Assembly (NCBI RefSeq): GCF_000143415.4
Contig: NW_003314312.1
Span: 735,510 to 799,509, forward strand
Origin: Selaginella moellendorffii
Lineage: Eukaryota; Plantae; Lycopodiophyta
Length of the DNA stretch: 64,000 nt
Reading direction: 5' to 3'
A model generated the notes under the pieces. That model saw nothing but the letters and a program-made list of their open reading frames with translations. It was not told where the DNA came from and did not search any database. Below, in pieces: positions 19,216 to 59,956 of this stretch. Position numbers and translations under genes: made by a program. How positions within the stretch are numbered: position 1 is the stretch's first letter; every line of letters starts with the position of its first letter.

Positions 19216-19441
19216 AATAAAACAGCTATATATTTCCAGCGGAACACCGGTAGTTTCTGAGTATTGAGATGTTCTAATTTTCTGCCTGCCAAAAGTATCA
19301 ACCATGCTTCACGAAAGAACCATAAAGAACTTACCAATTCCCATTCGTAACTTCGTCTCATCCTGCCGGGGAAAATGTGAAGGAAACTTACGAGATAAAT
19401 ATCAAAGCACAAAGGTTTCACCATTCTTTAGTTCTTAAACT

Positions 19442-19866
19442 GGAAGGAGCTCATGGCTCTCGCAATGAACCGAGAGCCGGGAAGCCTGACGACCGAGACA
19501 GAACGAGCCAAAGAGATACTCTGCTCCATCCTCCTGGGAAACAAGTCAGTGATCAACCACAAGGAACTCAAGCTGAGAACACACCTGGGACAAGGAGCTT
19601 ACGGAACCGTGTACGAAGCAATGTGGCTCGGTCACAAGTTCACGGTGAAAGTCTTCCCTCAAGGTGACACCAGCTTTGCCAAAGAGCTCGCGGTTCTCGG
19701 AGCTCACAAGCATCCCAACGTGTTGCACATTGCCGGCCATTCTTTCGATGGAGAGAAGCAGCAGTACTCGCTGGTGATGGAGAAGATGGACATGGACCTG
19801 GCAAACTACCTCCTCAAGAAGAACTCCCTCTCGTTGCTGTCGATCGTGGCAGTGATGCTCCAAGTC
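19442..19866 (+). pseudogene. Internal fragment of a subtype B kinase
   Basis: Carries B-type residues (KLRTHLG, GAHKHPN, SLSLLS). It lacks the N-terminus and ends before HRD. Confidence 0.85.
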
Positions 19867-20141
19867 ACTACTAATGAATGGGAATCAAAATTGTGACCAT
19901 CGTCTCCCGCTACTGTCATCAAGGGCCTAAAACATACACCAATTTTCTTGTCTGATTAAAGTATGATTCCCAAACCAAAAAAAAATGCCTTAGGACTTAG
20001 AATTATTCAACAAGAAAAGTCCAGACAAAAAAAAAATGCCTTAGGACTTAGAATTATTCAAAAAGAAAAGTCCACGGTAGACTTTTCCCACGCTATACCT
20101 TTACAAGAATGGTGCGGTGCTGGTAGTGATCACCAACGGGC

Positions 20142-22298
20142 ATGGCAGCAGCGACTTTGCTCGAGGCAATTCGAATCGTGGACAAGCTTGGCACAATATC
20201 CACTTCCAGCAAGGTCTGTAGAAACCAACATAGGATCCTCATCGCGGCGGTCGGCTATGTCCGAGACTACCTCAAGCAAATCCAGGATCTCAACTTCGCG
20301 AGCAACGGGCCAGCCTTCGTGTGGGACGAAACCGTGGCTGTCCTTAACAGAGGCCTCCATCTCCTCAAGTCGTGCCAAGAAGGCAATTGGATCACGCGGA
20401 GCCTCCTGTTCGAGGAAAGCTGCAATGAGTTTCAGAGCATTTATCCCGAGATCTACAACTGCGTCGAGCTCGTCAGCGTCTATCTCTTTCAGCTGGCACC
20501 GTCCACCTCGCACAGATCCAGGATTGCCGAGGCTTACAACTCGTGCCTCATGAGGCAGAACTCGAGCAGCATGCTGGAAGAAGCCGAAAGGAACGATCGG
20601 AAGGAGCTCATGACTCTCGCAATGAGCCAAGAGCCGGGAAGCCTGACGACTGAGACAGAACGAGCCAAAGAGATACTCTGCTCCATGCTCCTGGGAAACA
20701 AGTCAGTGATTAACCACAAGGAACTCAAGCTGACAACACACCTGGGACAAGGAGCTTACGGAACCGTGTACGAAGCAATCTGGCTCGGTCACAAGTTTGC
20801 AGTGAAAGTCTTCCCTCAAGGTGACACCAGCTTCGCCAAAGAGCTCGCGGTTCTTGAAGCGGACAAGCATCCCAACGTGTTGCACATCGCCGGCCATTGT
20901 TTCGATGAAGAGAAGCAGCGGTACTCGCTGGTGATGGAGAAGATGGAGATGGACCTGGCAAACTACCTCCTCAAGAAGAAGAACTCTCTCCCGTTGCTGT
21001 CGATCGTGGCAGTGATGCTCCAAGTTGCTACTGGCATGGCCTGGCTTCACTCGAAGAATATAATCCACCGGGACCTCAAGCCGCAGAACATCTTGGTTGG
21101 CGAAGAAGACAACGATCTCGTGAGTATCAGGATTGCCGACTTTGGAGTCTCGAGGCCAAACTTCATCTCCTCCCAGATCGAAGCCGTTAGCATCCAAGGC
21201 ACCAGGAACTTCATGGCACCGGAAGTGTGGAGCGGCGAGCGCTACACGAAGAAGGCCGACGTTTACAGGTACGGGATGCTGATTTACCAGCTTGTCACTG
21301 GAAACGTTCCGTTCGAGGACGGGATGGACATGGAGCAAGTCCTTCGAGGCGAGCGTCCTGAGGTACCAGCAACCTGTCCAGCATGCGGGAATGCTGGAGC
21401 CACGATGCAAAAGAGAGGCCTTCCTTCTCGGATATCTGCGAGCGGCTGAAGCAGCTCAAGACCAGGATCATCACTGGCACCGACTCCATCGACAAGTTAC
21501 GAGCCAAGTTGGTTGCAGCAGCCAGGTCATCTTCCTCTTCTTCGTACTCGTCGTCTTCCTCGTCCTCGTCGCACAGCAGGACTCGAGTGAACCTGGATTC
21601 TCCTGTCCAAGCACCTGAAGGGCTTTCAACCCAAAATCCTCCATCTCCCGTTGTCCAGGTAAACTCTTTTGGTTTTAGTAACTCCACCTTTAGTTTCAGC
21701 CGGCACCACACCGTCCTCAGCACGTCGCACCAGCAGCAAAGCCGGATAACAGGGCCGAGCTCTTCGAACTGGTGAAGAACGGCCTCGTCAAAAACGCCTT
21801 TGAGAAAGCTCTGTCCCTGAACGATCCTTCCACGGTCTGGTGGCTTTGCACCAAGGTAATCCATTCACGTCCTCCAGCTGCTCATCAAAGCTTTGTCAGC
21901 TCAGTTGGAGGTTAGCATCCTGCCCGCCTTCAGTGAATCAATGCTCATGGAAGTGGCCGAGCAAATCAACACCAACTTCAAGGAAGACACTGCTCGCAGG
22001 TTGCTCTGGTTCGCCGAGATCCTGTTCATCTTGCTGTACGTCAACGTCAATGGACAGACATCACCTCGGATGCAGAGGATCTTGGAGGAGCTTTCACAGA
22101 ACCTCCACGGCATGATGGCTATAACACCGTCAAAGAGCGAGCTGGGGACGGAGCTGGCGGACGTGCTGAAAAGAACCAACGTGGGTCTTCGGGTTCGTAT
22201 GAAGCTCTTCGTGTTATTCGTTTGATTCAAATCGTTTGTCGTCGCAGCGTATCCGATATGGGAACAAACTTCAGAAGAAAGGGAAAAGAAAACTGTGA
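20142..22298 (+). pseudogene. Array copy K2 (subtype A), frameshifted
   Basis: Near-identical to K3 over exon 1, but a 16-nt deletion at ~21381 shifts the frame late in the kinase domain. Confidence 0.85.
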
Positions 22299-22510
22299 AA
22301 TAAAAAAGCTATATATTTCCAGCGGAACACCGGTAGTTTATGAGTATTGAGATGTTCTAATTTTCTGCCTGCCAAAAGTATCAACCATGCTTCACGAAAG
22401 AACCATAAAGAACTTACCAATTCCCATTCGTAACTTCGTCTCATCCTGCTGGGGAAAATGTGAAGGAAACTTACGAGATAAATATCAAAGCACAAAGGTC
22501 TCACCATTCT

Positions 22511-22622
22511 TTACTTCTTAAACTCGAGTAGACGGTGAAGATCCCAACCTTTTCTATCTGGCAGCAGCAGTAGCAGCCTTGGCAGCTTCCGGATCATCGC
22601 TCTCCGCTCAAAGAACGATTTT
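22511..22622 (-). pseudogene. 3' remnant of the mL80-like gene
   Basis: KSFFERRAMI... matches the 3' end of 58589-59314. Confidence 0.75.
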
Positions 22623-23783
22623 CCAGAAACTTCATGGCACCAGAAGTGTGGACCAGCGAGCGCTACACGAAGAAGGCCGACGTTTACAGCTACGGGATGC
22701 TGAGCTACCAGCTTGTCACTGGAAACACTCCGTTCAAGGTCGGGATGGACATGGAGCAAGTCCTTCGAGGCGAGCGTCCTGAGATACCAGCCACCTGTCC
22801 AGAGTTCCTGTCGCAGCTCATGCGGGAATGCTGGAGCCACGATGCAAAAGAGAGGCCTTCCTTCTCCGATATCTGCAAGCGGCTGAAGCAGCTCAAGTCC
22901 AGGATCATCACTGGCACCGACACCATCGACGAGCTACGAGCCAAGTAGGTTGAAGCAGCCAGGTCATCTTCCTCTTCTTCGTACTCGTCGTCTTCCTTGT
23001 CCTCGTTGCACAGCAGGACTCGAGTGAACCTGGATTCTCTTGTCCAAGCGACTGAGAAGCTCTGGACCCAAAATCCCCCGCCTTGTCGTGTCCAGGTAAA
23101 CTCTTTTGCTTTATGTAACTTCTGGAGCTCACCACCTTTGGTTTCAGCCGGTACCACACCGTCCTCACCAGGTCGCACCATTACCAAAACCAGATCAAAG
23201 GACCGAGCTCTTCGAACTGGTAAAGAACGGCCTCATCATAAACGCCTTCGAGAAAGCTCTGTCCCTGAACGATCCTTCCAGTCTGGTGGCTTTGCACCAA
23301 GGTAATCTGTTTACGCTCTCTGGCCGCTGATCACGCCCGTCCTTTGTCAACTCAGGTAGAGCATACCGTGCTGCTTGTCTTCAGTGAATCGATGCTCATG
23401 GCACTGACCGAGAAAATTAACACCAACTTCACGGAAGACACTGCTCGCAGGCTGGTCTGGATCGACGAGACTGCCGTCTTGCTGTTCAAAGACGTCAATG
23501 GATGGGCATCACCTCGGAAGATGAGGATCCTGGAGCAGCTTTCATAGAACCTCCACGGTATGATGGCCATAACACCACCAAAGAGTGAGCTGGGCATGAC
23601 CTTAACGAACATGCTGGAAGGCACCAACGTGTGGCTGGAGGTTTGTACATATGAAGCTCTTCGTTTCTTTCGTTTCCATCCAACAAACCTACATCGTTTT
23701 GTTGCAGCGTGTCCGGATTGCAGTGGAACAAAGTTCGATACATGAGCATCGTTGGCAGATACTCTCCAGCGGAACACCGGTAT
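22623..23783 (+). pseudogene. 3' half of a subtype B kinase gene
   Basis: Starts at RNFMAPE and shares the premature TAG (22946-22948) with K4. Further lesions lie in the C-domain exons. Confidence 0.85.
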
Positions 23784-30455: not shown

Positions 30456-32646
30456 ATGGCAGCAGCGACTTTGCTCGAGGCAATTCGAATCGTGGACAAG
30501 CTTTGCACAATATCCACTTCCAGCAAGGTCTGTAGAAACCAACATAGGATCCTCATCGCGGCGGTCGGCTATGTCCGAGACTACCTCAAGCAAATCCAGG
30601 ATCTCAACTTCGCGAGCAACGGGCCAGCCTTCGTGTGGGACGAAACCGTGGCTGTCCTTAACAGAGGTCTCCATCTCCTCAAGTCGTGCCAAGAAGGCAA
30701 TTGGATCACGCGGAGCCTGCTGTTCGAGGAAAGCTGCAATGAGTTTCAGAGCATTTATCCCGAGATCTACAACTGCGTCGAGCTCATCAGCGTCTATCTC
30801 TTTCAGCTGGCACCGTCCACCTCGCACAGATCCAGGATTGCCGAGGCTTACAACTCGTGCCTCATGAGGCAGAACTCGAGCAGCATACTGGAAGAAGCCG
30901 AAAGGAACGATCGGAAGGAGCTCATGACTCTCGCAATGAGCCAAGAGCCGGGAAGCCTGACGACTGAGACAGAACGAGCCAAAGAGATACTCTGCTCCAT
31001 GCTCCTGGGAAACAAGTCAGTGATTAACCACAAGGAACTCAAGCTGACAACACACCTGGGACAAGGAGCTTACGAAACCGTGTACGAAGCAATCTGGCTC
31101 GGTCACAAGTTTGCAGTGAAAGTCTTCCCTCAAGGTGACACCAGCTTCGCCAAAGAGCTCGCGGTTCTTGAAGCGGACAAGCATCCCAACGTGTTGCACA
31201 TCGCCGGCCATTGTTTCGATGAAGAGAAGCAGCGGTACTCGCTGGTGATGGAGAAGATGGAGATGGACCTGGCAAACTACCTCCTCAAGAAGAAGAACTC
31301 TCTCCCGTTGCTGTCGATCGTGGCAGTGATGCTCCAAGTTGCTACTGGCATGGCCTGGCTTCACTCGAAGAATATAATCCACCGGGACCTCAAGCCGCAG
31401 AACATCTTGGTTGGCGAAGAAGACAACGATCTCGTGAGTATCAGGATTGCCGACTTTGGAGTCTCGAGGCCAAACTTCATCTCCTCCCAGATCGAAGCCG
31501 TTAGCATCCAAGGCACCAGGAACTTCATGGCACCGGAAGTGTGGAGCGGCGAGCGCTACACGAAAAAGGCCGACGTTTACAGGTACGGGATGCTGATTTA
31601 CCAGCTTGTCACTGGAAACGTTCCGTTCGAGGACGGGATGGACATGGAGCAAGTCCTTCGAGGCGAGCGTCCTGAGGTACCAGCAACCTGTCCAGAGTTT
31701 CTGTCGCAGCTCATGCGGGAATGCTGGAGCCACGATGCAAAAGAGAGGCCTTCCTTCTCGGATATCTGCGAGCGGCTGAAGCAGCTCAAGACCAGGATCA
31801 TCACTGGCACCGACTCCATCGACGAGTTACGAGCCAAGTTGGTTGCAGCAGCCAGGTCATCTTCCTCTTCTTCGTACTCGTCGTCTTCCTCGTCCTCGTC
31901 GCACAGCAGGACTCGAGTGAACCTGGATTCTCCTGTCCAAGCACCTGAAGGGCTTTCAACCCAAAATCCTCCATCTCCCGTTGTCCAGGTAAACTCTTTT
32001 GGTTTTAGTAACTCCACCTTTAGTTTCAGCCGGCACCACACCGTCCTCAGCACGTCGCACCAGCAGCAAAGCCGGATAACAGGGCCGAGCTCTTCGAACT
32101 GGTGAAGAACGGCCTCGTCAAAAACGCCTTTGAGAAAGCTCTGTCCCTGAACGATCCTTCCACGGTCTGGTGGCTTTGCACCAAGGTAATCCATTCACGT
32201 TCTCCAGCTGCTCATCAAACCTTTGTCAGCTCAGGTGGAGCAAAGCGTCCTGCTCCTCTTCAGTGAATCAATGCTCATGGAAGTGGCCGAGCAAATCAAC
32301 ACCAACTTCAAGGAAGACACTGCTCCCAGGTTGCTCTGGATCGAGGATATCCTGGACATCTTGCTGTTCGTCGACAATGTCAATGGACAGACATCACCTC
32401 GGATGCAGAGGATCTTGGAGAAGCTTTCACAGAACCTCCACGGCATGATGGCTATAACACCGCCAAACAACGAGCTGGGGATGAAGCTGGCGAAAGCGCT
32501 GGAAGATACCAACATGGGTCTTCATGTACGTATGAAACTCTTCGTGTTATTCGTTTGATTCAAATCGTTTGTCGTCGCAGCATATCCGAGTTGAGAACAG
32601 CAAAGCTGAGAAGAAAGGGAAAAGAAAACAGGGACTTATGATGTGA
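30456..32646 (+). CDS. Array copy K3 (subtype A), open reading frame with G-loop and subdomain IX substitutions
   Basis: Same four-exon layout as K1, with a 41-nt intron 1 (31989-32029). GQGAYETVY and DVYRYG deviate from consensus. Confidence 0.75.
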
Positions 32647-33943: not shown

Positions 33944-36177
33944 ATGGCAGCAGCGACTTTGCTCGAGGCGATTCGAATCGCGGACAAGGTTGGCACAAGA
34001 TCCACGAACACAAACTCGAGCAAGGTCTGTAGAAACCAATGTAGGATCCTCATCGCAGCGGTCGGCTATGTCCGAGACTACCTCAAGCAAATCCAGGATC
34101 TCAACTTCGCGAGCAACGGGCCAGCCTTCGTGTGGGACGAAACCGTGGCTGTCCTTAACAGAGGCCTCCATCTCCTCAAGTCATGCCAAGAGGGCGATTG
34201 GATCGCCCGGAGCCTGCTGTTCGAGGAAAGCTGCGATGAGTTCCAGGGCATTTACCACGAGATCTACAACTGCGTCGAGCTCGTCAGCGTCTATCTCTTT
34301 CAGCTGACACCGTCCACCTCGCACAGATCCAGGATTGCCGAGGCTTACAACTCGTGCCTCATGAGGCAAAACTCGAGCAGCATGCTGGAAGAAGCCGGAA
34401 GGAACGATCGGAAGGAGCTCATGACTCTCGCAATGAACCAAGAACCAGGAAGCCTGACGACCGAGACAGAACGAGCCAAAGAGATACACTGCTCCATGCT
34501 CCTGGGAAACAAGTCAGTGATCAACCACAAGGAACTCAAGCTGAGAACACACCTGGGACAAGGAGCTTACGGAACCGTGTACGAAGCAATGTGGCTCGGT
34601 CACAAGTTCGCGGTGAAAGTCTTCGCTCAAGGTGACACCAGCTTCGCCAAAGAGCTCGCGGTTCTCGGAGCTCACAAGCATCCCAACGTGTTGCACATTG
34701 CCGGCCATTCTTTCGATGGAGAGAAGCGGCAGTACTCGCTGGTGATGGAGAAGATGGACATGGACCTGGCAAACTACCTCCTCAAGAAGAACTCCCTCTC
34801 GTTGCTGTCGATCGTGGCAGTGATGCTCCAAGTCGCTACTGGCATGGCTTGGCTTCACTTGAAGAACGTAATCCACCGGGACCTCAAGCCGCAGAACATC
34901 TTGGTTGGCGAAGAAGACAACGATCTCGTGAGTATCAGGATTGCCGACTTTGGAGTCTCGAGGCCCGATTTCATCTCCTCCCTCATCAGCGAAGCCACCC
35001 CCAAGCAAGGCACCAGAAACTTCATGGCACCAGAAGTGTGGACCAGCGAGCGCTACACGAAGAAGGCCGACGTTTACAGCTACGGGATGCTGAGCTACCA
35101 GCTTGTCACTGGAAACACTCCGTTCAAGGTCGGGATGGACATGGAGCAAGTCCTTCGAGGCGAGCGTCCTGAGATACCAGCCACCTGTCCAGAGTTCCTG
35201 TCGCAGCTCATGCGGGAATGCTGGAGCCACGATGCAAAAGAGAGGCCTTCCTTCTCCGATATCTGCAAGCGGCTGAAGCAGTTCAAGTCCAGGATCATCA
35301 CTGGCACCGACTCCATCGACGAGCTACGAGCCAAGTAGGTTGAAGCAGCCAGGTCATCTTCCTCTTCTTCGTACTCGTCGTCTTCCTTGTCCTCGTTGCA
35401 CAGCAGGACTCGAGTGAACCTGGATTCTCTTGTCCAAGCGACTGAGAAGCTCTGGACCCAAAATCCCCCGCCTTGTCGTGTCCAGGTAAACTCTTTTGCT
35501 TTATGTAACTTCTGGAGCTCACCACCTTTGGTTTCAGCCGGTACCACACCGTCCTCACCAGGTCGCACCATTACCAAAACCAGATCAAAGGACCGAGCTC
35601 TTCGAACTGGTAAAGAACGGCCTCATCATAAACGCCTTCGAGAAAGCTCTGTCCCTGAACGATCCTTCCACAGTCTGGTGGCTTTGCACCAAGGTAATCT
35701 GTTTACGCTCTCTGGCCGCTGATCACGCCCGTCCTTTGTCAACTCAGGTAGAGCATACCGTGCTGCTTGTCTTCAGTGAATCGATGCTCATGGCACTGGC
35801 CGAGAAAATCAACACCAACTTCACGGAAGACACTGCTCGCAGGCTGGTCTGGATCGACGAGATTGGCGTCTTGCTGTTGAAAGACGTCAATGGATGGGCA
35901 TCACCTCGGAAGATGAGGATCCTGGAGCAGCTTTCACAGAACCTCCACGGTATGATGGCCATAACACCACCAAAGAGTGAGCTGGGCATGACCTTGACGA
36001 ACATGCTGGAAGGCACCAACGTGTGGCTGCAGGTTCGTACATATGAAGCTCTTCGTTTCTTTCGTTTCCATCTCCTTGATTCACATCGTTTTGTTGCAGC
36101 GTATCCGGGTTGCTGTGGAAAACAAAGTTCGATACATGAGCATCGTTGGCGGATATTTTCCAGCGGAATACCGGTAG
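33944..36177 (+). pseudogene. Array copy K4 (subtype B) with a premature stop right after the kinase domain
   Basis: TTG>TAG at 35336-35338 gives a 464-aa N-domain+kinase ORF. The downstream exons are still open. Confidence 0.8.
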
Positions 36178-41737: not shown

Positions 41738-44700
41738 ATGGCAGCAAAAAGTTTGGCCGAGGCAATTCGAATCTCGGACAAAGTTGCCGCAAGGTCCACG
41801 AACACAAACTCGAGCAAGGTCTGTAGGAACCAATGTAGGATCTTCTTAGCAGCGGTCGACCATGTCGGAGACTACCTCAAGCGAATCCAGGATCTCAACT
41901 TCGCGAGCACTGGGACAGCTTTCGTGTGGGACGAAACCGTGGCTGTCCTTAAGAGAGGCCTCCATCTCCTCAAGTCGTGCCAAGAAGGCAATTGGATCGC
42001 GCGGAGCCTGCTGTTCAAGGAAAGCTGCGATGAGTTCCAGAGCATTTATACCGTCCACCTCGGTAAGATCCAAGATTGCCGAAGCTTACAACTCGTGCCT
42101 CATGAGGCAAAACTCGAACAGCATGCTGGAAGAAGCCGGAAGGAATGACAGGAAGGCGCTCATGGCTCTCGCAATGAGCCAAGAGCCGGGAAGCCTGACG
42201 ACCGAGAGCGAGCAAGCCAAAGAGATACTTTGCTCCATGCTCCTGGGAAACAAGTCAGTGATTAACCACAAGGAACTCAAGCTGACAACACACCTGGGAC
42301 AAGGCGGTTTCGGAACCGTGTACGAAGCAATCTGGCTCGGTCACAAGTTTGCAGTGAAAGTCTTCCCTCAAGGTGACAAGAGCTTCGCCAAAGAGCTCGC
42401 GGTTCTCGAAGCGGACAAGCATCCCAACGTGTTGCACATCGCCGGTCATTCTTTCGATGAAGAGAAGCAGCGGTACTCGCTGGTGATGGAGAAGATGGAC
42501 ATGGACCTGGCAAACTACGTCCTCAAGAAGAACTCTCTCCCGTTGCTGTCGATCGTGGCAGTGATGCTCCAAGTTGCTACTGGCATGGCGTGGCTTCACT
42601 CGAAGAATATAATCCACCGGGACCTCAAGCCGCAGAACATCTTGGTTGGCGAAGAAGACAACGATCTCGTGAGTATCAGGATTGCCGACTTTGGAGTCTC
42701 GAGGCCAAACTTCATCTCCTCCCAGATCGAAGCCGTTAGCATCCAAGGCACCAGGAACTTCATGGCACCGGAGGCGTGGAGCAGCGAGCGCTACACGAAA
42801 AAGGCCGACGTTTACAGCTACGGGATGCTGATTTACCAGCTTGTCACTGGAAACGTTCCGTTCGAGGACGGGATGGACATGGAGCAAGTCCTTCGAGGCA
42901 AGCGTCCTGAGATACCAGCCACCTGTCCAGAGTTCCTGTCGCAGCTCATGCGGGAATGCTGGAGCCACGATGCGAAAGAGAGGCCTTCCTTCTCGGATAT
43001 CTGCGAGCGGCTGAAGCAGCTCAAGACCAGGATCATCACTGGCATCGAGTCCATCGACGAGTTACGGGTCAAGTTGGTTGAAGTAGCCGGGTCGTCTTCC
43101 TCTTCTTCGTACTCGTCGTCTTCCTCATCCTCGTCGCACAGCAGGACTCGAGTGAACCTGGATTCTCTTGTCCAAGCGACTGAAGGGCTTTGGACCAAAA
43201 ATCCTCCATCTCCCCTTGTACAGGTAAACTCTTTTGTTTTTAGTAACTTCCGGTGCTCATCGTGTTTAGTTTCAGCCGGTACCACACCGTCCTCAGCACT
43301 TCGCACCAGTAGCAAAACCGGATAACAGGACCGAGCTCTTCGAACTGGTGAAGAACGGCCTCGTCAGAAACGCCTTCGAGAAAGCTCTGTCCCTGAACGA
43401 TCCTTCCATGGTCTGGTGGCTTTGCACCAAGGTAATCCATTCACGTCCTCCAGCTGCTCATCAAAGCTTTGTCAGCTCAGGTGGAGCATACCGTCCTGCT
43501 TGTCTTCAGTGAATCAATGCTCATGGAACTGGCCGAGCAAATCAACACCAACTTCAAGGAAGACACTGCTCGCAGGTTGCTCTGGATCGACGAGATTGGC
43601 ATCTTGCTGTTCAAAGACGTCAATGGACAGGCATGGTCATCACCTCGGGTGCTGAGGATCTTGGAGCAGCTTTCACAGAACTTCCACGGCATGATGGCTA
43701 TAACACCGCCAAAGAGCGAGCTGGGGATGAAGCTGGTGAACATGCTGGGTGGCACCAACATGGGTCTCCAGGTTCGTATGAAGCTCTTCGTGTTATTCAT
43801 TTGATTCAAATCGTTTGTTGTCGCAGCATATCTGTTAGGCACCAGCTTTGACTACGTGGTCAACATCGGTCAAAGGGTATATGAAGGCATGTTAGGGTAA
43901 GGGACTTAACTTACCCTAGGGCTCACAGTGGAGTGGTGGTGCAGTGGAACTTTTGAGGTAGCTCAGGGGTGGTTGGGTGGTGAGGAACCTCAAGAGGTGG
44001 CATAGCATAATCTAGGGCAACTAGATTTTTGTCTTTTTGCGCCGGATCATAACATTGGTATCAGAGAAGTTGGTTGCGATGGCCGACCAAGCTGAACGCT
44101 GGAATCCTATTGTCGATGGTGGTGCCAACAATGGTGCTGACGAAGCTGCAGAGATTTAGACCATTCAAGATGTGGTTCATGAGCTGCGAGCCCTTAACCG
44201 AAATCAGTAAGAGATGCAAGATGAGATGCATGGCATGATGGATACCATGCGTGGGCGTGTTGAGGCACTCGAGGCTGGACGGGGTAGCGCTCCAAGTAAA
44301 CCTTCTTTGGTAGATCGACTCAAAATTCCAAATTTTTCCGGTGATGGTGGTGTGGACGAGTGTCTCGCTTGGCTAGCCAATGTGAAGAAGTTCTTGGCTG
44401 CTAGAGGAACTCCAGATGCAGAGGCTTTAGTGGCTATTCCGATGGTTTTGCGTGATGCGGGTTTTCGATGGTGGAATTGGCTTGAGGAGTCCCGTGTTGT
44501 GGATAAGAAACCACCAGTGTCTACCATGGATGAGTTTGAGGTTGCTTTTCATTTATGTTTTGCCCCTCATTACGACATGGAGAATGCTCGTACAGAACTT
44601 TGACATTTTCAGCAAAGGAAAATGATGCTCGGGGACTATATTGAGAAGCTTACTTGCTTGATTAGTCGTGTTCCAACGAAGGATCCAGATCAGAACAAGT

Positions 44701-47700
44701 CCTACTTCATTGATGGCCTACATAGTGAGAGCATGCGGCAACACTTGCGTCATTCTCAGCCTACAAAGAGTTTGAAGGAGCTCTTTGATGTGGCTCGTCG
44801 ACTTGACAATGATAAGCACAAGTCTCGCAAGCGTTTGCGGAGTCCTTCTGTCGAGAATCGTCGTGATGATCACCATGGACACAAGGATGGGAACAAGCAT
44901 CACAAATTGAAGTCAGTGGTGACTACTTCGGATGCAAAGGGGTCCAAGAAGTAGAAGTTCTTTGTGAAGAATTATAGACAAGGTTGTCATCATTGCGGCG
45001 AACTTGGACANNNNNNNNNNNNNNNNNNNNNNNNNNNNNNNNNNNNNNNNNNNNNNNNNNNNNNNNNNNNNNNNNNNNNNNNNNNNNNNNNNNNNNNNNN
45101 NNNNNNNNNNNNNNNNNNNNNNNNNNNNNNNNNNNNNNNNNNNNNNNNNNNNNNNNNNNNNNNNNNNNNNNNNNNNNNNNNNNNNNNNNNNNNNNNNNNN
45201 NNNNNNNNNNNNNNNNNNNNNNNNNNNNNNNNNNNNNNNNNNNNNNNNNNNNNNNNNNNNNNNNNNNNNNNNNNNNNNNNNNNNNNNNNNNNNNNNNNNN
45301 NNNNNNNNNNNNNNNNNNNNNNNNNNNNNNNNNNNNNNNNNNNNNNNNNNNNNNNNNNNNNNNNNNNNNNNNNNNNNNNNNNNNNNNNNNNNNNNNNNNC
45401 TTGTGTCGAGGGGCTGGAAGTGTTGGTTGGCAAAACCACACTTGTGGAGACTTTTTATCTCACGGATATCCATCGTGTGGATCTCATTCTTGGGATGCCA
45501 TGGTTGGCAAAGGTGGATCCAGAGATAAAGTGGAGCATTAAGCGTATCTCGCTGGAGTATGGTGGCGTTAAAGATGTGTGGTTTGGCGAGGGCGTTCAAC
45601 CACCAGTTGTTATGCTCTCTGCTACATCTTTGAAACGGGCTTGTCATAATAAAAAAGCACTTTCAAGTTACTTGCTGTTTGTTCGTGACTTGGGGGACCA
45701 AGGCACGTGTGGGGGAGAAGCAGCAGTACAGGATATATTTGACGAGTTTTCTGATGTTTTTCCATATGAACTTCCTCATGGATTACCTCCGTTACGAGGT
45801 GTGGAGCATGGGATTACATTGGAGTCGGGGATGCGGCCAATTTACCAGTGTCCATTTTGGTTAAGTTATGCGCAGGAGCAAGAAGTTCAACGACAAGTCA
45901 AGGAGTTACTTGAGTTTGGATTTATTCAGCCAAGTAAGTCTCCGTTTGGTGCTCCAGTCTTGCTTGTGAAGAAGAAAGACGGTTCAATGCGGTGAAGGAC
46001 AAGATTTACCGTGCTTTAAACAAGAAGACAGTGAAGGACAAGATGCCGATGCCACGTGTGGATGATATCCTGGACAAGCTTGGTGAAGCACGAGTGTTTA
46101 CTAAGATTGATCTGAGGAGTGGATATCATCAGATTGCAATGGATGATGCATCTATCTCCAAGACGGCATTCAACACAAGTTTCGGACATTTTGAGTTTAC
46201 CGTTATGCCGTTTGGTTTGACGAATGCACTGGCCACATTTACTCAGTTGATGACGGAGGTATTTGGGCGTTATCTTCATGAGTTTGTGAAGATTTTCTTG
46301 GACGATATTCTTGTTTTTAGCAAGAATATGGAGGAGCATAGGGTGCATTTGCGCAAGGTTCTTTTGTTACTTTGAGATAGCAAACTTTATGCGAAGAAGA
46401 GCAAATGTGAATTTGCAAAGTCGGAGGTGGAATATCTAGGCCATATTGTGACATCTAAGGGTGTCAAGACAGATCCAGGAAGGTGGCTATGGTGGAAAAC
46501 TGGCCTACACTGACTACAGTGGCCGAGTTGTGCAGTTTTCTTGGTATGGCTAGTTACTACCGACGTTTCCAGCATAAGTTTGCAGAGGTGGCTATTCCTT
46601 TGACGTGGTTGTTACGCAAGAATGTGCCATTCGAGTGGAAGAAGCCACAAGAGGAGAGTTTTGTAGCGCTGAAATGATTGTTGAGCGAGGCTCTAGTGCT
46701 TCGCATTGCTGATCCATTGAAACCTTACGAGGTGACATGCGATGTGAGTGGTTATGCACTGGGAGGAGTTTTTATGCAAGAGGGACAGCCTATTGCATGT
46801 GAGAGTCGAACTTTGAATTCCGCAAAGCAATGTTATTCCACATATGAGCAAGAGTTACTCTCTATTGTTCATGCTTTGTAGACGTGGCGGCACTATCTTT
46901 ATGGTGCAGTGTTCGTGGTGTTGACAGATCACAAACCACTTGTGTATCTTTTCACACAGAAGGAGTTGAACACTAGACAAGCTCGTTGGATGGTCAAACT
47001 CATGGAGTTTGGGGAGTTTCCTATTGAGCATTGTCCGGGAAAATCCAATGTGGTGGCAGATGCTTTATCTCGTGTTCGTCATATGACGACATTACAAACA
47101 CGATTTTGTCATCATTTGAGTAAGGTGGTCAGTGGGTTTGGACAGTTGGTTGAGCATGCTCAGGCTCAGGATGCTGAGGTGGCCTCTTTGCGTGACCAGA
47201 TGGAAGCTCCTTTCTCATTGGTGGATGGGATTCTCTATTACAATGGCCGTGTATATTTGCCACGGGTGGATGCGTTAATTACTCAAGTTTTATTCCACTA
47301 TCATGATCGTCCAGAGGCCGGTCATTTTGGGGGGAAGAAGACGTATAAATTGATTAAGCGCAACTTTTATTGGAGGAATATGAAGGTTGATATCCTCAAG
47401 TATTGTAAATCATGCGAGCTTTGTCAGCGGGTTAAGGTGCCACGAGAGAAGCCGGGGGGACTTTTGCAACCTTTACCTATTCCTCAGAGCCGTTGGTGTA
47501 GTATCTCTATGGACTTCATCACTTGTTTGCCACGAACACAGAGGCAAAAGGAGCAAGTATGGGTTATAGTGGATCGGTTGACAAAGTATGTGCGGTTGTT
47601 GGCTCTTCGGAAGATTGTCACTGCCTCAGACTTGGCTGCGGTTTACTTGGAGAAGGTTTTTCCTGATTTTGGTTTGCCAGAGGACATCATTAGTGATCGA

Positions 47701-48804
47701 GATTCAAAGTTCACCAGTGGATTTTGGAAAAGCTTTGCAAAGGTTATACAAGTGACTTTGAAACTCTCGAGTGGAGATCATCCTTAGACGGATGGGCAAA
47801 CCGAGCGTGTAAATCAAATGGTGGAGGATATGCTACATTGTAGCATTGGTCAAAGGCAAGGACAGTGGGATTTTTATCTTCCGTTGGTGCAATTTGCTTA
47901 CAACAATAGCCAACACAGTGGAACCAAGCTAAGTCCTTACTTTGCCATGTTTGGAAGGCATCCTCAAATAGTAGTGGAGTTGGGATTGCATTTGAGTAAA
48001 GACATTCAAGATAAGCTTGATTCCAAGGCAACTGATCTGGCCACAGAACTTGATGAGATCTTGGTGGTGTGCAAACAAAATTTGCAAGCAGCTCAGGATA
48101 GAGCGGAGAAGTTTGCCAATGAGCATCACCAATTCCAGGAATATAAGGTGGGTGGTCTGATCTTTGTACGCGTGATCTTTCCGTCAAGTGAGCGGTAGAA
48201 CACCTTGGTGCCTTTACGGACAGGGAAGAGTGATAAACTTTCCCATCGATATGCTAGTCCATATGAAGTGCTGGAGCACTTTGGTAAAGCGGCTTATCGG
48301 GTGTGGCTGCTAGCTGGGGTGAAAATTCATCCGGTATTTTATGTCAGCCAGTTGAAAGGTGTACTATTTCGGAGTGACGGGCCCAATGCCTCCTTGATGT
48401 ATACAGCTGTGGAAGATGGACCAGAAGCTTGAGTAGGATTCCCTAGAAAGGGTGATCACAAATTCAACTCGTCCTTGGGACAAGGACTTTGTTGGGGGGG
48501 AAGAATTGTTAGGCGCCAGCTTTGACTACGTGGTCAACGTCAGTCAAAAGGGGGCTCAAGGGTATATGAAGGCATGTTAAGGTAAGGGACTTAACCTACC
48601 CTAGGGCTCACAGTGGAGTGGCGGCGCAATGGAGCTTTTGAGGTAGTTTGGGGGTGGTTGGGTGGTGAGGTGGTGTAGCATAATCTAGGGCAACTAGATT
48701 TTTGTCTTTTTGCGCCGGATCATAACAGTATCTGAGTTGCAGTTGACAGCAAAGTTCAACACATGAGAGTCCTTGGAGGATACTTTCCAGTGGAACACCG
48801 GTAG
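41738..48804 (+). pseudogene. Array copy K5 (subtype A'), frameshifted and interrupted by a Gypsy element
   Basis: A 53-nt deletion at ~42050 relative to K7 shifts the frame. Exon 4 starts at 43827 and resumes at 48733 (..GGYFPVEHR*). Confidence 0.85.
43833..48727 (+). mobile_element. Full-length degenerate Ty3/Gypsy LTR retrotransposon
   Basis: LTRs 43833-44054 and 48507-48727 (TG...CA); PBS TGGTATCAGAG at 44056; PPT before the 3' LTR; gag, PR (DLILGMPWL), RT (FLDDIL), RNase H, INT (ISMDF) order; imperfect 5-bp TSD ATATC/GTATC; many stops. Confidence 0.95.
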
Positions 48805-49698: not shown

Positions 49699-51932
49699 AT
49701 GGCAGCAGCGAATTTGCTCGAGGCGATTCGAATCGCGGACAAGGTTGGCACAAGATCCACGAACACAAACTCGAGCAAGGTCTGTAGAAACCAATGTAGG
49801 ATCCTCATCGCGGCGGTCGGCTATGTCCGAGACTATCTCAAGCAAATCCAGGATCTCAACTTCGCGAGCAACAGGCGAGCCTTCGTATGGGACGAAACCG
49901 TGGCTGTCCTTAAAAGAGGCCTCCATCTCCTCAAGTCATGCCAAGAGGGCGATTGGATCGCTCGGAGCCTGCTGTTTGAGGAAAGCTGCGATGATTTCCA
50001 GAGCATTTACGCCGAGATCTACAACTGCGTCGAGCTCGTCAGCGTCTATCTCTTTCAGCTGGCACCGTCCACCTCGCACAGATCCAGGATTGCCGAGGCT
50101 TACAACTCGTGCCTCATGAGGCAGAATTCGAGCAGCATGCTGGAAGAAGCCGGAAGGAACGATCGGAAGGAGCTCATGGCTCTCGCAATGAACCAAGAGC
50201 CGGGAAGCCTGACGACCGAGACAGAACGAGCCAAAGAGATACTCTGCTCCATGCTCCTGGGAAACAAGTCAGTGATCAACCACAAGGAACTCAAGCTGAG
50301 AACACACCTGGGACAAGGAGCTTACGGAACCGTGTACGAAGCAATCTGGCTCGGTCACAAGTTCGCGGTGAAAGTCTTCGCTCAAGGTGACACCAGCTTC
50401 GCCAAAGAGCTCGCGGTTCTCGGAGCTCACAAGCATCCCAACGTGTTGCACATTGCCGGCCATTCTTTCGATGGAGAGAAGCGGCAGTACTCGCTGGTGA
50501 TGGAGAAGATGGACATGGACCTGGCAAACTACCTCCTCAAGAAGAACTCCCTCTCGTTGCTGTCGATCGTGGCAGTGATGCTCCAAGTCGCTACTGGCAT
50601 GGCTTGGCTTCACTCGAAGAACGTAATCCACCGGGACCTCAAGCCGCAGAACATCTTGGTTGGCGAAGAAGACAACGATCTCGTGAGTATCAGGATTGCC
50701 GACTTTGGAGTCTCGAGGCCCGATTTCATCTCCTCCCTCATCAGCGAAGCCACCCCCAAGCAAGGCACCAGAAACTTCATGGCACCAGAAGTGTGGACCA
50801 GCGAGCGCTACACGAAGAAGGCCGACGTTTACAGCTACGGGATGCTGAGCTACCAGCTTGTCACTGGAAACATTCCGTTCAAGGTCGGGATGGACATGGA
50901 GCAAGTCCTTCGAGGCAAGCGTCCTGAGATACCAGCCACCTGTCCAGAGTTCCTGTCGCAGCTCATGCGGGAATGCTGGAACCACGATGCGAAAGAGAGG
51001 CCTTCCTTCTCGGATATCTGCGAGCGGCTGAAGCAGCTCAAATCCAGGATCATCACTGGCACCGACTCCACCGACGAGCTACGAGCCAAGTTGGTTGAAG
51101 CAGCCAGGTCATCTTCCTCTTCTTCGTACTCGTCGTCTTCCTCGTCCTCGTCGCACAGCAGGACTCGAGTAAACCTGGATTCTCTTGTCCAAGCGACTGA
51201 GAAGCTTTGGACCCAAAATCCCCCGCCTTCCCGTGTCCAGGTAAACTCTTTTGCTTTATGTAACTTCTGGAGCTCACCACCTTTGGGTTCAGCCGGTACC
51301 ACACCGTCCTCACCACGTCGCACCATTACCAAAACCAGATAAAAGGACCGAGCTCTTCGAACTGGTAAAGAACGGCCTCATCATAAACGCCTTCGAGAAA
51401 GCTCTGTCCCTGAACGATCCTTCCACAGTCTGGTGGCTTTGCACCAAGGTAATCTGTTTACGCTCTCTGGCCGCTGATCACGCCCGTCTTTTGTCAACTC
51501 AGGTAGAGCATACCGTGCTGCTTGTCTTCAGTGAATCGATGCTCATGGCACTGGCCGAGAAAATCAACACCAACTTCACGGAAGACACTGCTCGCAGGCT
51601 GGTCTGGATCGACGGGATTGGCGGCTTGCTGTTGAAAGACGCCAATGGATGGGCATCACCTCGGAAGATGAGGATCCTGGAGCAGCTTTCACAGAACCTC
51701 CACGGTATGATGGCCATAACACCACCAAAGAGTGAGCTGCGCATGACCTTGACGAACATGCTGGAAGGCACCAACATGTGGCTGCAGGTTCGTACATATG
51801 AAGCTCTTCGTTTCTTTCGTTTCCATCTCCTTGATTCACATCGTTTTGTTGCAGCGTGTCCGGGTTGCAGTGGAAAACAAAGTTCGATACATGAGCATCG
51901 CTGGCGGATACTTTCCAGCGGAACACCGGTAG
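49699..51932 (+). CDS. Array copy K6 (subtype B), apparently intact
   Basis: Exon 1 is 49699-51240, followed by a 52-nt intron. Exons 2-4 are open and end RVRVAVENKVRYMSIAGGYFPAEHR*. Catalytic motifs are intact. Confidence 0.82.
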
Positions 51933-54660: not shown

Positions 54661-56206
54661 CTATTACTTTGAAAGTTCTAAAAATGCTTGTTTACCTCTA
54701 AAGTTCTTATGCTCCTCATAAAAATCCTTGGCAAGCACAAGTGCTAGAACTTCCAAGGAATGTGAAGTGGAAAAATTGATAAATCACTTTTTTACTTAGA
54801 ATTCTTGCTGGTATAGCTGCTCCCAAATTCTGGCAACAAATTGATGCGCTCCCGCTGCAAAGCAATTCAATCAATCCACACTAAGAACTAAGAGCTAGCA
54901 TACCCTAGATCCGGCCAGCAATTGCTGAGCAGAGTAAATACCTAATACTAGCATTGAAAGAGCCAAGGCACCCCAGACGACATTGTCAATGCCATTGGCA
55001 AATTGCCAAGATGCCAAGCCCAGTATGCAGATGTCTAGCTAAAAATATATGGCACCATATGAATTAATTTTTTATTAGTGGCATATTTTATTTATAATAT
55101 AAATTCTGAATAAATAACAGTCATTAATCCCCAGTTAAGTCATCAGCTTTGATCCCAGCTATGTATGATTCCTTTTGCTCTTGTGAGCCATCTAAATTGC
55201 TGAAAATTGATGTTTTATTAGTTCTTATGTTTATATATGGATCTGGAAATATTGAGAATCCAAAAGCACCCAAAAAAGGGAAAATCCTATTTTAATATCC
55301 AACTTATGATTTGGGGGATCAAAGGGTTATTAAAATAGGAAAGTATAAATTATTTTCCCTTTTTAGGTATAGATTATATCCAATGCTTGGAATATGGAAA
55401 GGGAATACAGAAAATGTACATATCAATTAATAAAATATCAATTTTTAGCAATTTAGATGGCTCATTCTTTCTCTCTCTCAAAGAAGAACATGTATCACAT
55501 ATTAGTAGGAGCAAAAAAATATCACAAAAATACATCCACTATATTACTTACAAGAGTAACTTCAATATTATACAACAAGTGAAAAAGGTTGAGGACTAAT
55601 GTTTACCATACATGTGTGACATATATAATGATGTACTTTAAATTCTGTTAATTCCATATCACCATTTATACAATATTTTCTTGTAGTGTTAAAGTGATAT
55701 AAAAAATATATTTAACTTTTCTTTTACTACATAGGCTGTGATATCTACCATGGATCAAGCTTCCATGATTAGTCACCTTAAACAGACTTCTACAAGCGTA
55801 TTAGAAGAAGAAGTTCAGACTCTTAAACAACTTTACCTAAGAATATAAAATCCAGTTCAAAGAGGAAAGTATGCCTTTTATAGCCTTATTAAACATATTA
55901 TTCCCCAGGAGCAATGGATATTTCTGCACGCCCACATTGGCAAGTTGGATCAAACACAATCACTTAGCAAGTTGGCCTCAAACACAATCATGTTTCTCCA
56001 ATAACTACACCAATAGCACTACTTCTACAACTCCACCAAAAAAATATCAATAGCATTACCCCTTGATCTTGCCACTATGGAGAACAAAACGTGCCATGAT
56101 ACTAGTTTATATTTTCGAAGCGCAACTACACATGAAATTTCGAAAAGTCAACAATCATTTTCCAGGATATAGCTTTCCAACATCAATCGGCGCTGGTGGT
56201 GATTGC

Positions 56207-58435
56207 ATGGCAGCGAAAAGTTTGGCCCAGGCAATTCGAATCTCGGACAAAATTGCCGCAAGGTCCACGAACACAAACTCGAGCAAGGTCTGTAGGAACC
56301 AATGTAGGATCTTCTTAGCAGCGGTCGGCCATGTCCGAGACTACCTCAAGCGAATCCAGGATCTCAACTTCGCGAGCACTGGGACAGCTTTCGTGTGGGA
56401 CGAAACCGTGGCTGTCCTTAAGAGAGGCCTCCATCTCCTCAAGTCGTGCCAAGAATGCAATTGGATGGCGCGGAGCCTGCTGTTCAAGGAAAGCTGCGAT
56501 GAGTTCCAGAGCATTTATCCCGAGATCTTCAACTGTGTCGAGCTCGTCAGCGTCTATCTCTTTCAGCTGGCACCGTCCACCTCGGTAAGATCCAAGATTG
56601 CCGAAGCTTACAACTCGTGCCTCATGAGGCAAAACTCGAACAGCATGCTGGAAGAAGCCGGAAGGAATGACAGGAAGGCGCTCATGGCTCTCGCAATGAG
56701 CCAAGAGCCGGGAAGCCTGACGACCGAGAGCGAACAAGCCAAAGAGATACTTTGCTCCATGCTCCTGGGAAACAAGTCAGTGATTAACCACAAGGAACTC
56801 AAGCTGACAACACACCTGGGACAAGGCGGTTTCGGAACCGTGTACGAAGCAATCTGGCTCGGTCACAAGTTTGCAGTGAAAGTCTTCCCTCAAGGTGACA
56901 AGAGCTTCGCCAAAGAGCTCGCGGTTCTCGAAGCGGACAAGCATCCCAACGTGTTGCACATCGCCGGTCATTCTTTCGATGAAGAGAAGCAGCGGTACTC
57001 GCTGGTGATGGAGAAGATGGACATGGACCTGGCAAACTACGTCCTCAAGAAGAAGAACTCTCTCCCGTTGCTGTCGATCGTGGCAGTGATGCTCCAAGTT
57101 GCTACTGGCATGGCATGGCTTCACTCGAAGAATATAATCCACCGGGACCTCAAGCCGCAGAACATCTTGGTTGGCGAAGAAGACAACGATCTCGTGAGTA
57201 TCAGGATTGCCGACTTTGGAGTCTCGAGGCCAAACTTCATCTCCTCCCAGATCGAAGCCGTTAGCATCCAAGGCACCAGGAACTTCATGGCACCGGAGGT
57301 GTGGAGCAGCGAGCGCTACACGAAAAAGGCCGACGTTTACAGCTACGGGATGCTGATTTACCAGCTTGTCACTGGAAACGTTCCGTTCGAGGACGGGATG
57401 GACATGGAGCAAGTCCTTCGAGGCAAGCGTCCTGAGATACCAGCCACCTGTCCAGAGTTCCTGTCGCAGCTCATGCGGGAATGCTGGAGCCACGATGCAA
57501 AAGAGAGGCCTTCCTTCTCGGATATCTGCGAGCGGCTGAAGCAGCTCAAGACCAGGACCATTACTGGCACCGACTCCATGGACGAGTTACGAGCCAAGTT
57601 GGTTGAAGCAGCCAGGTCATCTTCCTCTTCTTCGTACTCGTCGTCTTCCTCGTCCTCGTCGCACAGCAGGACTCGAGTGAACATGGATTCTCTTGTCCAA
57701 GCGACTGAGAAGCTTTGGACCCAAAATCCTCCTCCTCCCTTTGTCCAGGTAAACTCTTTTGCTTTTAGTAACTTCCGGAGCTCGCCACGTTTGGTTTCAG
57801 CCGGTACCACACCGTCCTCAGCACGTCGCACCAGCAGCAAAGCCGGATAACAGGACCGAGCTCTTCGAACTGGTGAAGAATGGCCTCGTCAAAAACGCCT
57901 TCGAGAAAGCTCTGTCCCTGAACGATCCTTCCACGGTCTGGTGGCTTTGCACCAAGGTAATCCATTCACGTCCTCCAGCTGCTCATCAAAGCTCGTCCTT
58001 TGTCAACTTAGGTGGACCATACCGTCCTGCTTGTCTTCAGTGAATCAATGCTCATGGAACTGGCCGAGCAAATCAACACCAACTTCAAGGAAGACACTGC
58101 TCGCAGGTTGCTCTGGCTCGACGAGATTGGAATCTTGCTGCTCAAAGACGTCAATGGATGGGCATGGTCATCACCTCGGATGCTGAGGATCCTGGAGCAG
58201 CTTTCACAGAACCTCCACGGCATGATGGCTACAACACCGTCAAAGAGCGAGCTGGGGATGAAGCTGGCGAAAGCGCTGGAAGGTACCAACGTGGGTCTCC
58301 AGGTTCGTATGAAGCTCTTCGTGTTATTCGTTTGATTCAAATCGTTTGTCGTCGCAGCATGTCCGAGTTGCAGTGGACAGCAAAGCTCAATACATGAGAG
58401 TCCTCGGAGGATACTTTCCAGCGGAACACCGGTAG
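56207..58435 (+). CDS. Array copy K7 (subtype A'), apparently intact, ~688 aa spliced
   Basis: Predicted exons 56207-57748, 57801-57956, 58012-58302, 58358-58435. All introns are phase-0 GT-AG and 52-55 nt long. Confidence 0.85.
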
Positions 58436-58588
58436 TTTCTGAGTATTTCGATGTTCTAATTTGCTTCAACCAATTCCCATTCTTGACTTTGAGTAAACGC
58501 CTATCATCCTCTCATCCTGCCAGGGAAAACGTGAAGCATTCTTAAGAGACAAAAATCCAAGATAAAAGCTCCCACCATTCTTTAGTTC

Positions 58589-59314
58589 TTAAACTCGAGT
58601 AGACGGTGAAGAGCCCAACCTTTTCGATCTGGCAGCAGCAGTAGCAGCCTTGGCAGCTTCCGCAGCAGCGTAGACACCAGTAGTTCTCGTAGCCACAGCA
58701 TCGAGGATCATCGATCTCCGCTCAAAGAACGATTTTGCCGCTTTCAACTTCTCGGGATCCCCATACTTGTATGGCTTGTAGACGATCCCAGCAGCTAGCC
58801 GCTGCTTCTTGAGCTTGGCTGGACGAACGTACGCATCGCCCAGCTTGGCCTTCAATCTCTTCAAGCGCTTCTGGATCACTCTCCTCCGGTACACTCGCGG
58901 CTCGGGGATCTTGGGATCGGCGAGCGGCAGGCGATCTGGAGCAGGAGGCACAGCAACCCACCTGAAAATCCGATCGTCCGCGTGACCACCACCACCGCCT
59001 CCCGCTTTGTTGCGCTTGCCCGGATTCTTGGAGCCGGCGCTCTCGCCGTGCAAGCACTGCGTGTGGACGAGGAATTTGCTGCGGAGCCACACGAGCAAGC
59101 GCCTCATGTGTGTCTTGCTCTTGATCCCTTCCTTCTCGGCGTGCTCCCAGAGATCGCGCGATCCAATCGGGCCATGGGTGCGAACAATGCTGAGTACCTT
59201 CTGCGTCGGCAGATCCTTGGGGCTCTTCTTGGCGTAGAGGAAGGGATTGGAGAGATCCACCTCGTGGAGCTTGTAAAGGCGCCGTGGGAAGCGACGAGCG
59301 AGCTCCACCGCCAT
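58589..59314 (-). CDS. Basic protein resembling the plant mitoribosomal mL80-type family
   Basis: IVRTHGPI...LWEHAEKEGIKSKTHMRRLLVWLR resembles the remembered family pattern (HGPL...W..A...SKTHMK.LL.WMR). Single intact ORF. Confidence 0.55.
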   Translation of the reverse strand: MAVELARRFPRRLYKLHEVDLSNPFLYAKKSPKDLPTQKVLSIVRTHGPIGSRDLWEHAEKEGIKSKTHMRRLLVWLRSKFLVHTQCLHGESAGSKNPGKRNKAGGGGGGHADDRIFRWVAVPPAPDRLPLADPKIPEPRVYRRRVIQKRLKRLKAKLGDAYVRPAKLKKQRLAAGIVYKPYKYGDPEKLKAAKSFFERRSMILDAVATRTTGVYAAAEAAKAATAAARSKRLGSSPSTRV

Positions 59315-59542
59315 GGCGCCCAAAAACCCTAGCCAAAACCCTAATCCCAGGATCACATTGCTCTATCAAAATATCGATTGCTCGAGTAAAATCTGGAATG
59401 GCGCGAGAGAAATCACTGCTCCACCGCCATGGCACCCAAGAACCCTAATACTACGATCGCATTGTGCTCGAGAACGAAGAACACTAGAATTAAAGAGGGG
59501 AAAATTTTGGTATTCCAGGATCTGGGGCAAGAGAAGAAAGAA

Positions 59543-59956
59543 TCACTCCTCCTCCACCGTCTTGGTCTCGAGCTTCCGGAATCCCTCGGCCGGGAGCTCC
59601 GCCACGGTGACGTAGCTGTAGAGCTCCTCCTTGGCGTCCTCGTCGTCGTTGCGCTTGCGAGCAATCCGGACGCGAATCCTCCGCGGCACATTGCGGATGC
59701 CTCTACTCCAGACGTGCTTGTTGAGCTTGACATCCACCCTCACATCCGAGGTTCCCATGGCCTTTTGCGCGAATTTCTTGATCTCCTTCACCGCCCGGGG
59801 AGCCATCTTCTTGAAGGTGCTGCGGCAAAACAATCGATTCGATCGAATGGAGCGTGCGATTGAAGCTTACCAGCCATGGATCCGCTTGTGGAGATTGATG
59901 GTGTACTCCCTCGTCACGACCTCCTTCTTGCTGCGGCTGTTCTTCTTGTCGGCCAT
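59543..59956 (-). CDS. RPL31: 60S ribosomal protein L31 (eL31), one intron
   Basis: [17 protein letters not shown], intron, [17 protein letters not shown]...[21 protein letters not shown]. Confidence 0.95.

Follow-up and report, generated by a model that had tools for sequence, protein, structure and literature searches.

The window that we analysed is a stretch of 64,000 nucleotides of the Selaginella moellendorffii genome (contig NW_003314312.1, positions 735,510 to 799,509). Towards its end lies a plus-strand gene of four exons (56207-58435), whose product, as read from the DNA, is 688 aa long. An uninterrupted ORF covers 56063-57850 (+), and within it 56207 is the first ATG that coincides with the start of the paralogs; from this start codon exon 1 continues in open frame to 57748. 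A tblastn search with a paralog of 685 aa (P0003) showed that the gene extends past the long ORF, and the exon model is based on homology to the NCBI paralog models together with canonical GT..AG introns of 52-55 nt, all of them in phase 0. Predicted intron 1 (57749-57800, +, 52 nt, GTAAAC..TTTCAG) corresponds to a stretch that the NCBI paralog models skip, and predicted introns 2 and 3 (57957-58011 and 58303-58357, +) are 55 nt each, with GT..AG borders. Exons 2 (57801-57956, +) and 3 (58012-58302, +) encode most of a C-terminal domain described below, while exon 4 (58358-58435, +), which includes the stop codon, ends in …GGYFPAEHR.

Translation of 56207-57847 gives 547 aa that match an NCBI protein from S. 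moellendorffii with 99% identity, and about ten paralogs match at 86-92% identity. For searches and folding the exons were used singly rather than as a joined four-exon protein, with NCBI paralog models serving as proxies. The NCBI model for this very copy, P0001, does not splice out intron 1, and is therefore without the C-terminal tail. P0001 also starts at an upstream ATG (MENKTCHD…, window positions 56078-56206), which in the present sequence is shifted by one base from the frame of the ORF; this mismatch seems to be a difference between alleles or assemblies, and the paralogs begin at the MAA… methionine.

Five modules can be read along this protein, and their identities are probably as follows: a diverged four-helix bundle of the MLKL type, brace helices, a TKL kinase, a serine-rich linker and a C-terminal domain resembling that of EDC4/VARICOSE. 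An earlier note on this DNA, made from the letters alone, had placed an MLKL/HeLo-like domain joined to an active kinase at 56207-57600. The N-terminal strings and kinase motifs that it quoted are indeed found in the translation, and its span takes in both the N-domain and the kinase; its end, however, falls within the post-kinase linker, some way before the end of the gene at 58435.

Tandem amplification and decay of the gene family

The gene is the last of an array, demonstrated by tblastn, blastn and frame checks, that occupies 17-58 kb of the window and comprises seven full-length copies and two fragments. Besides the copy at 56207, exon 1 is intact in those at 17058-18575, 30456-31988 and 49699-51240 (all +). 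The copies at 20142-22201, 33944-36174 and 41738-43792 (all +) are damaged, the first and the last by frameshifts and the second by a stop at codon 465, and the fragments (tblastn, blastn) lie at 19439-19872 and 22623-23780 (+). Intact and damaged members thus stand side by side in a birth-and-death pattern. The NCBI model P0002 (804 aa; window 20142-23780) contains a second, partial kinase and appears to be a chimera of the frameshifted copy and the neighbouring 3' fragment. A fragment of an LTR-retrotransposon integrase / RNase H is located at 46909-47787 (+), between two of the array copies.

Pairwise dN/dS values of the array copies range from 0.33 to 0.62 across all domains, and no diversifying selection is detected by this per-domain measure, tail included. 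Divergence between the paralogs is greatest in the core of the EDC4_C-like domain (dN 0.146). Taken as a whole, the locus is more probably than not one apparently intact copy of an MLKL-like family that is specific to Selaginella and has been amplified in tandem.

A kinase with intact catalytic motifs

Residues 196-450 (56792-57556, +) form a TKL-type protein kinase. Pfam matches residues 198-444 to Pkinase (E 3.6e-52) and PK_Tyr_Ser-Thr (E 7.8e-53), and E values near 1e-52 put this assignment far beyond chance. As the earlier note had claimed, the catalytic motifs are intact: GQGGFG (G205-G210), AVK (A223-K225), HRDLKPQN (H312-N319), DFG (D336-G338) and APE (A362-E364); the alphaC Glu is present as well. 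In this copy all catalytic residues are there, unlike in the pseudokinases of MLKL. The Lys, Glu, HRD, DFG and APE are kept in the five window copies examined and in eleven NCBI models. The copy at 30456-31988 (P0004) is alone in having Glu in place of the third Gly of the G-loop (GQGAYE); this change may mark the beginning of a transition to a pseudokinase inside the array.

The best sequence matches in the PDB are human MLK1 and MLK4, followed by the pseudokinase of AtMLKL3 (128.6 bits), which comes ahead of ABL, SRC and RAF; the 60 best matches consist of MLK, ABL/SRC and RAF kinases, one EGFR chain and AtMLKL. Neither these 60 matches nor a kinase tree places the domain among the RLK/Pelle kinases (LRR-VIII / DLSV). 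The tree, a quick maximum-likelihood analysis of 110 kinase domains with the AtMLKL sequences left aside, unites the Selaginella group, a Sphagnum-type group and a group around P0031 in one clade with strong support (SH-aLRT 97). Both of the latter groups also carry long helical N-domains. An Adiantum protein with a DUF1221 domain (P0018) was discarded as evidence from the tree, where its position is uninformative: part of its catalytic core is missing and its branch is long.

Affinities of the N-terminal domain

Judged by its sequence alone, the N-domain is an orphan. Neither MLKL_N (PF22215) nor DUF1221 (PF06760) matches this protein at the Pfam gathering score, nor does any other HeLo-type Pfam family reach threshold on it, the best such match being to DUF7792 below threshold (E 0.02-0.13; 0.003 in P0003). 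With residues 1-195 as query, a word search finds Selaginella paralogs alone, and phmmer, run exhaustively against 1.84 billion representatives, returns the family's own cluster and no relatives outside it. A profile of the paralog N-domains has zero matches in the PDB at E up to 10, alignment of the domain by hhalign with two shallow alignments of relatives is not significant (E 0.019 and 0.061), and a word search with the N-domain of P0031 likewise recovers that protein's own cluster only.

Language-model (ESM) features, on the other hand, put the N-domain nearest to clusters of plant PUB10_N, DUF7792, MCAfunc, RPW8 and MLKL_N proteins (top score 0.95, with 217 of 256 features shared), Pfam families that co-occur on the same clusters. 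The N-domains of the relatives in the kinase clade match MLKL_N over nearly the whole profile (E 2e-5) without reaching the cut-off, and that of the Adiantum protein matches DUF1221 above threshold. When an HMM was built from non-Selaginella N-domains only (moss and fern relatives), it gave residues 1-190 a score of 24.8 bits, with residues 26-177 aligned, whereas none of 7,000 shuffles reached this score (maximum 14.7); the bundle alone (residues 1-125) scored 15.7 bits, a value exceeded by one of 6,000 shuffles. E66, G74, W86, C110 and L186 are invariant in the 17-sequence alignment of N-domains, and the brace motif LEEAGRNDRKAL aligns with VEEASRRD or VENASKID in the moss relatives.

Residues 1-195 are all-helical in both AlphaFold runs. 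In the AF2 model m7eec00358494 (pLDDT 79.3, pTM 0.75), which was built from the 17-sequence alignment including distant relatives, a four-helix bundle is predicted for residues 1-125 (56207-56581, +; helices 2-17, 30-52, 62-83 with 86-90, and 93-121), and brace-like helices for residues 126-195 (56582-56791, +; helices 125-140, 145-165 and 173-187) bridge the bundle to the kinase. Among 48,161 representative PDB chains compared with this model by VIA-align, the N-domain of human MLKL ranks first (6ux8_A, Z 14.1, rmsd 2.6 Å, 144 of 152 residues aligned), and three MLKL structures, human, mouse (Z 11.5) and AtMLKL3, are in the top five. Residues 1-228 of AtMLKL3 (6ka4_A) align with residues 3-195 of the model over 186 positions, brace included (Z 11.6). 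NRG1.1 CC-R, Rx CC and MLA13 come below the MLKLs, with Z values of 8-9. In Foldseek, all E values are above 0.09, the entries with a probability of at least 0.9 are MLKL entries only, and the best query-normalised TM (0.59) is that of AtMLKL3.

An earlier AF2 model, made from an alignment of Selaginella paralogs only, had a pLDDT of 57.8 and gave generic helical matches with no MLKL among them (Foldseek, Atlas and VIA); for these reasons it was dropped as evidence in either direction. The absence of the MLKL match from the paralog-only model does mean that the fold evidence depends on distant homologs that are themselves inferred.

Could the likeness to MLKL be a chance similarity among helical bundles, the N-domain being an unrelated invention of this lineage? 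The lack of sequence relatives outside the family, the empty PDB search with the paralog profile and the first model would all agree with this, as would the high background of the structural search for helical proteins, in which the unrelated THATCH core of HIP1R attains a Z value of 13.2. Chance similarity does not readily account, however, for the gap between the relatives' profile score and its shuffles, for the near-complete coverage of three MLKL structures so high among all chains, for the restriction of confident Foldseek matches to MLKL entries, or for language-model features that independently indicate the same plant superfamily. We consider it improbable, the least likely of the alternatives discussed here. 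On the basis of the ESM features, the Pfam matches and profile of the relatives and the AF2 model, lines of evidence that are partly dependent on one another, the N-domain is very likely an MLKL-type four-helix bundle plus brace. The HeLo/MLKL-like character proposed in the earlier note is therefore upheld by the relatives' profile and the model, if not by any Pfam family at threshold, and the AlphaFold modelling that it suggested does yield a predicted four-helix bundle, with human MLKL as the best structural match in VIA-align, provided that distant relatives are in the alignment.

An EDC4/VARICOSE-like C-terminal domain

Behind the kinase, a linker with the serine run SSSSSSYSSSSSSSSHS (approximately 57617-57667, +, as read from the translation) leads to a tail resembling the C-terminal domain of EDC4. 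In P0003 and P0004 this tail scores 30.9 and 33.6 bits, respectively, against Pfam EDC4_C (PF21289; cut-off 27). In the copy at 56207, with the exons scored singly, the domain begins in exon 2 (profile positions 3-32, 14.3 bits) and has its core in exon 3 (profile positions 45-114, 16.4 bits). The full architecture of EDC4, including the N-terminal WD40 propeller, is absent, Pfam seeing only the kinase and EDC4_C in the 685-aa P0003. By ESM features the tail is nearest to an EDC4_C cluster (0.91), and the tail of P0003 (residues 515-685) is also akin to the C-terminus of TORTIFOLIA1 and to the con80 domain of katanin p80. Two of the Arabidopsis MLKLs are reportedly associated with microtubules. 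A profile of the EDC4_C-like tail found nothing in the PDB apart from a chance match to Nup96 (E 0.97).

In Arabidopsis, VARICOSE dimerises and binds DCP2 through its C-terminal domain, to which the TAV protein of CaMV also binds (PMC6504953); association with P-bodies and EDC4 has been reported for a rust effector (PMC4749346). These precedents of pathogen proteins that bind the VARICOSE C-terminal domain or act at EDC4 suggest a role for the Selaginella tail as a bait or in anchoring, and by analogy both roles are plausible. The earlier note had imagined a sensor in the same polypeptide; the only candidate for such a module is the EDC4_C-like domain, which lies beyond the region it described (57801-58435).

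Transcription of the locus

Contigs assembled from public runs (four runs from four studies, the RNA status of which is guessed) cover 56062-58700 and beyond. The dominant assembled RNA at this copy is a spliced antisense transcript. One of its introns (56765-56815, -, GT..AG) lies within the coding sequence of the kinase, with the joint present in four runs from four studies, and a second (58517-58575, -, GT..AG) is likewise found in contigs from four studies. Splicing of the three sense introns was not seen in any contig over this copy, and the contigs do not demonstrate its sense expression. The antisense transcript may explain why P0001 reads through intron 1. Past 58700 the transcript enters the region of a minus-strand ORF of 255 aa (58589-59356), which has no Pfam match and is itself located downstream of RPL31e (59543-59833).

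These contigs bear on whether the copy is a functional gene at all. It could be silent or decaying, its ORF being intact merely through recent duplication and its transcribed product being a long spliced antisense RNA. Two minus-strand introns recurring across studies with none of the three sense introns removed, an NCBI model that lacks the EDC4_C-like tail, and the damage seen in three of the array's seven full-length copies all fit such a state. Decay should nevertheless be set against four exons that are all open with canonical splice sites and against dN/dS values below 1, and contigs prove the presence of a transcript rather than the absence of another, the more so with runs whose RNA status is guessed. 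We regard a silent copy as unlikely, and retain the reading of an apparently intact gene.

A possible mechanism

On the model of MLKL in animals and Arabidopsis, and of Pm13 or R3AK, the bundle and brace would be packed on the kinase in the resting state. Either autophosphorylation or a perturbation of the EDC4_C-like tail, whether this serves as a bait or as a P-body anchor, might then free the bundle and brace. Once freed, these could oligomerise and lead to membrane- or calcium-linked defence or cell death. A function of the Selaginella protein as cell-death executor, switch or sensor is thus inferred by analogy with those systems.

The same architecture might belong to an ordinary TKL signalling kinase with no function in cell death, the helical N-domain being a regulatory or dimerisation module; this is a doubtful reading, if somewhat less so than a silent copy. 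We hold in equally low expectation its corollary, that the EDC4_C-like tail docks on the decapping complex and P-bodies, or on microtubules, and that the kinase phosphorylates the proteins resident there. Conservation of the catalytic motifs in all paralogs would be expected of such an enzyme, and the dimerisation and DCP2 binding of the VCS C-terminal domain (PMC6504953), along with the presence of the TORTIFOLIA1 C-terminus and katanin con80 among the feature relatives of EDC4_C, would suit its docking. What speaks for an MLKL-like protein instead is the modelling of the N-domain as an MLKL-type bundle plus brace, and the tandem birth-and-death amplification with its damaged copies. Amplification of this kind is commoner in defence genes than in housekeeping kinases.

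If the MLKL-like reading is true, kinase fusion proteins would gain in the EDC4_C-like tail an integrated domain of a kind not seen before, which would suggest that mRNA decapping is an old target of pathogens. MLKL-type executors have a pseudokinase in animals and Arabidopsis, and versions with a working-type kinase have been reported from grasses only. A lycophyte family with an intact MLKL-like kinase would help to place the origin of the pseudokinase in time and to explain it, and would offer a natural setting in which to ask if autophosphorylation can substitute for an upstream kinase.

Comparison with known systems

The plant MLKLs, described by Mahdi et al. in a survey of seed plants, consist of HeLo domain, brace, pseudokinase and serine-rich tail (10.1101/681015). 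AtMLKL1-3 (PDB 6KA4, 6LBA) are like the Selaginella protein in the order of bundle, brace, kinase fold and serine-rich stretch (10.1101/681015), and the kinase-like domain of AtMLKL3 shares with it the elements VME-M..DL, MLQ.A.GM.(Y/W)LHSK and VPFED. The catalytic motifs differ: AtMLKL3 has GNGS-- in the G-loop, replaces AVK by ALR and the alphaC Glu by Gln, has HGELNPSN and GFG where HRDLKPQN and DFG would stand, and retains only the PE of APE, whereas all of these motifs are intact in the Selaginella kinase. The bundle of the plant MLKLs is a DUF1221 domain, while the Selaginella N-domain falls below the thresholds of both DUF1221 and MLKL_N, and the Selaginella protein has the added EDC4_C-like domain. 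The two also differ in distribution, Selaginella being a lycophyte and the plant MLKL family having been described for seed plants. Of EDC4/VARICOSE, the Selaginella protein has just the C-terminal 120 residues or so, fused behind the kinase.

The nearest relatives of the kinase are moss-type and unassigned proteins that join a four-helix bundle to a kinase (Sphagnum P0025 and P0033, and the P0031 group, drawn from assemblies of metagenomes or transcriptomes; clade support 97), and the kinship demonstrated here extends to the N-domains as well: these are alignable with that of Selaginella and have E, G, W and C positions in common with it, at 13-18% identity. The P0031 group has HGD where Selaginella has HRD, and the C-terminal additions of these relatives are different from the Selaginella tail: the moss-type P0026, P0033, P0035, P0036, P0012 and P0025 end either in another kinase domain or in a long stretch that is hydrophobic and membrane-like. 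This clade seems to acquire varied modules behind the kinase. In our literature search, neither lycophyte or moss versions nor a fusion with EDC4_C turned up in any paper; work based on NLRtracker contains 'MLKL' matches in non-flowering plants, which are not described there (PMC11218826).

One tentative scenario, which we think has a minor chance of being correct, is that plant MLKLs were at first active bundle-brace-kinases. This form would have been kept in lycophytes and mosses, the pseudokinase of seed plants would be derived, and the Selaginella form would have captured the pathogen-targeted end of VARICOSE as a bait. A sensor, a kinase switch and an executor would then be united in a single chain outside the NLR system, with amplification and turnover like those of a resistance-gene cluster.

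In grasses, Pm13 (an MLKL-K of wheat/Aegilops) and R3AK combine a four-helix bundle with a kinase that is predicted to be functional (PMC10951266, PMC11297308, 10.64898/2026.08.07.743466), which contradicts the premise of the earlier note that angiosperm MLKLs pair the domain with a pseudokinase. A brace-kinase fragment of Pm13 kills in a kinase-dependent manner, and the MLKL-Ks are stated by the authors to be restricted to Poaceae (PMC10951266, PMC11297308, 10.64898/2026.08.07.743466). As is the case in Selaginella, these proteins have a bundle, a brace and a predicted functional kinase, the grass ones being defence genes. They are without the EDC4_C tail that the Selaginella protein carries, and the kinase of Pm13, reported from Poaceae only, belongs to the LRR-VIII type of RLK/Pelle kinases, whereas the Selaginella kinase is of the TKL type and groups with moss proteins; the two kinds of bundle-kinase appear to have independent origins. 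The combination of a bundle with a working-type kinase is thus already known from the grasses (Pm13), and the Selaginella version is a variant of it.
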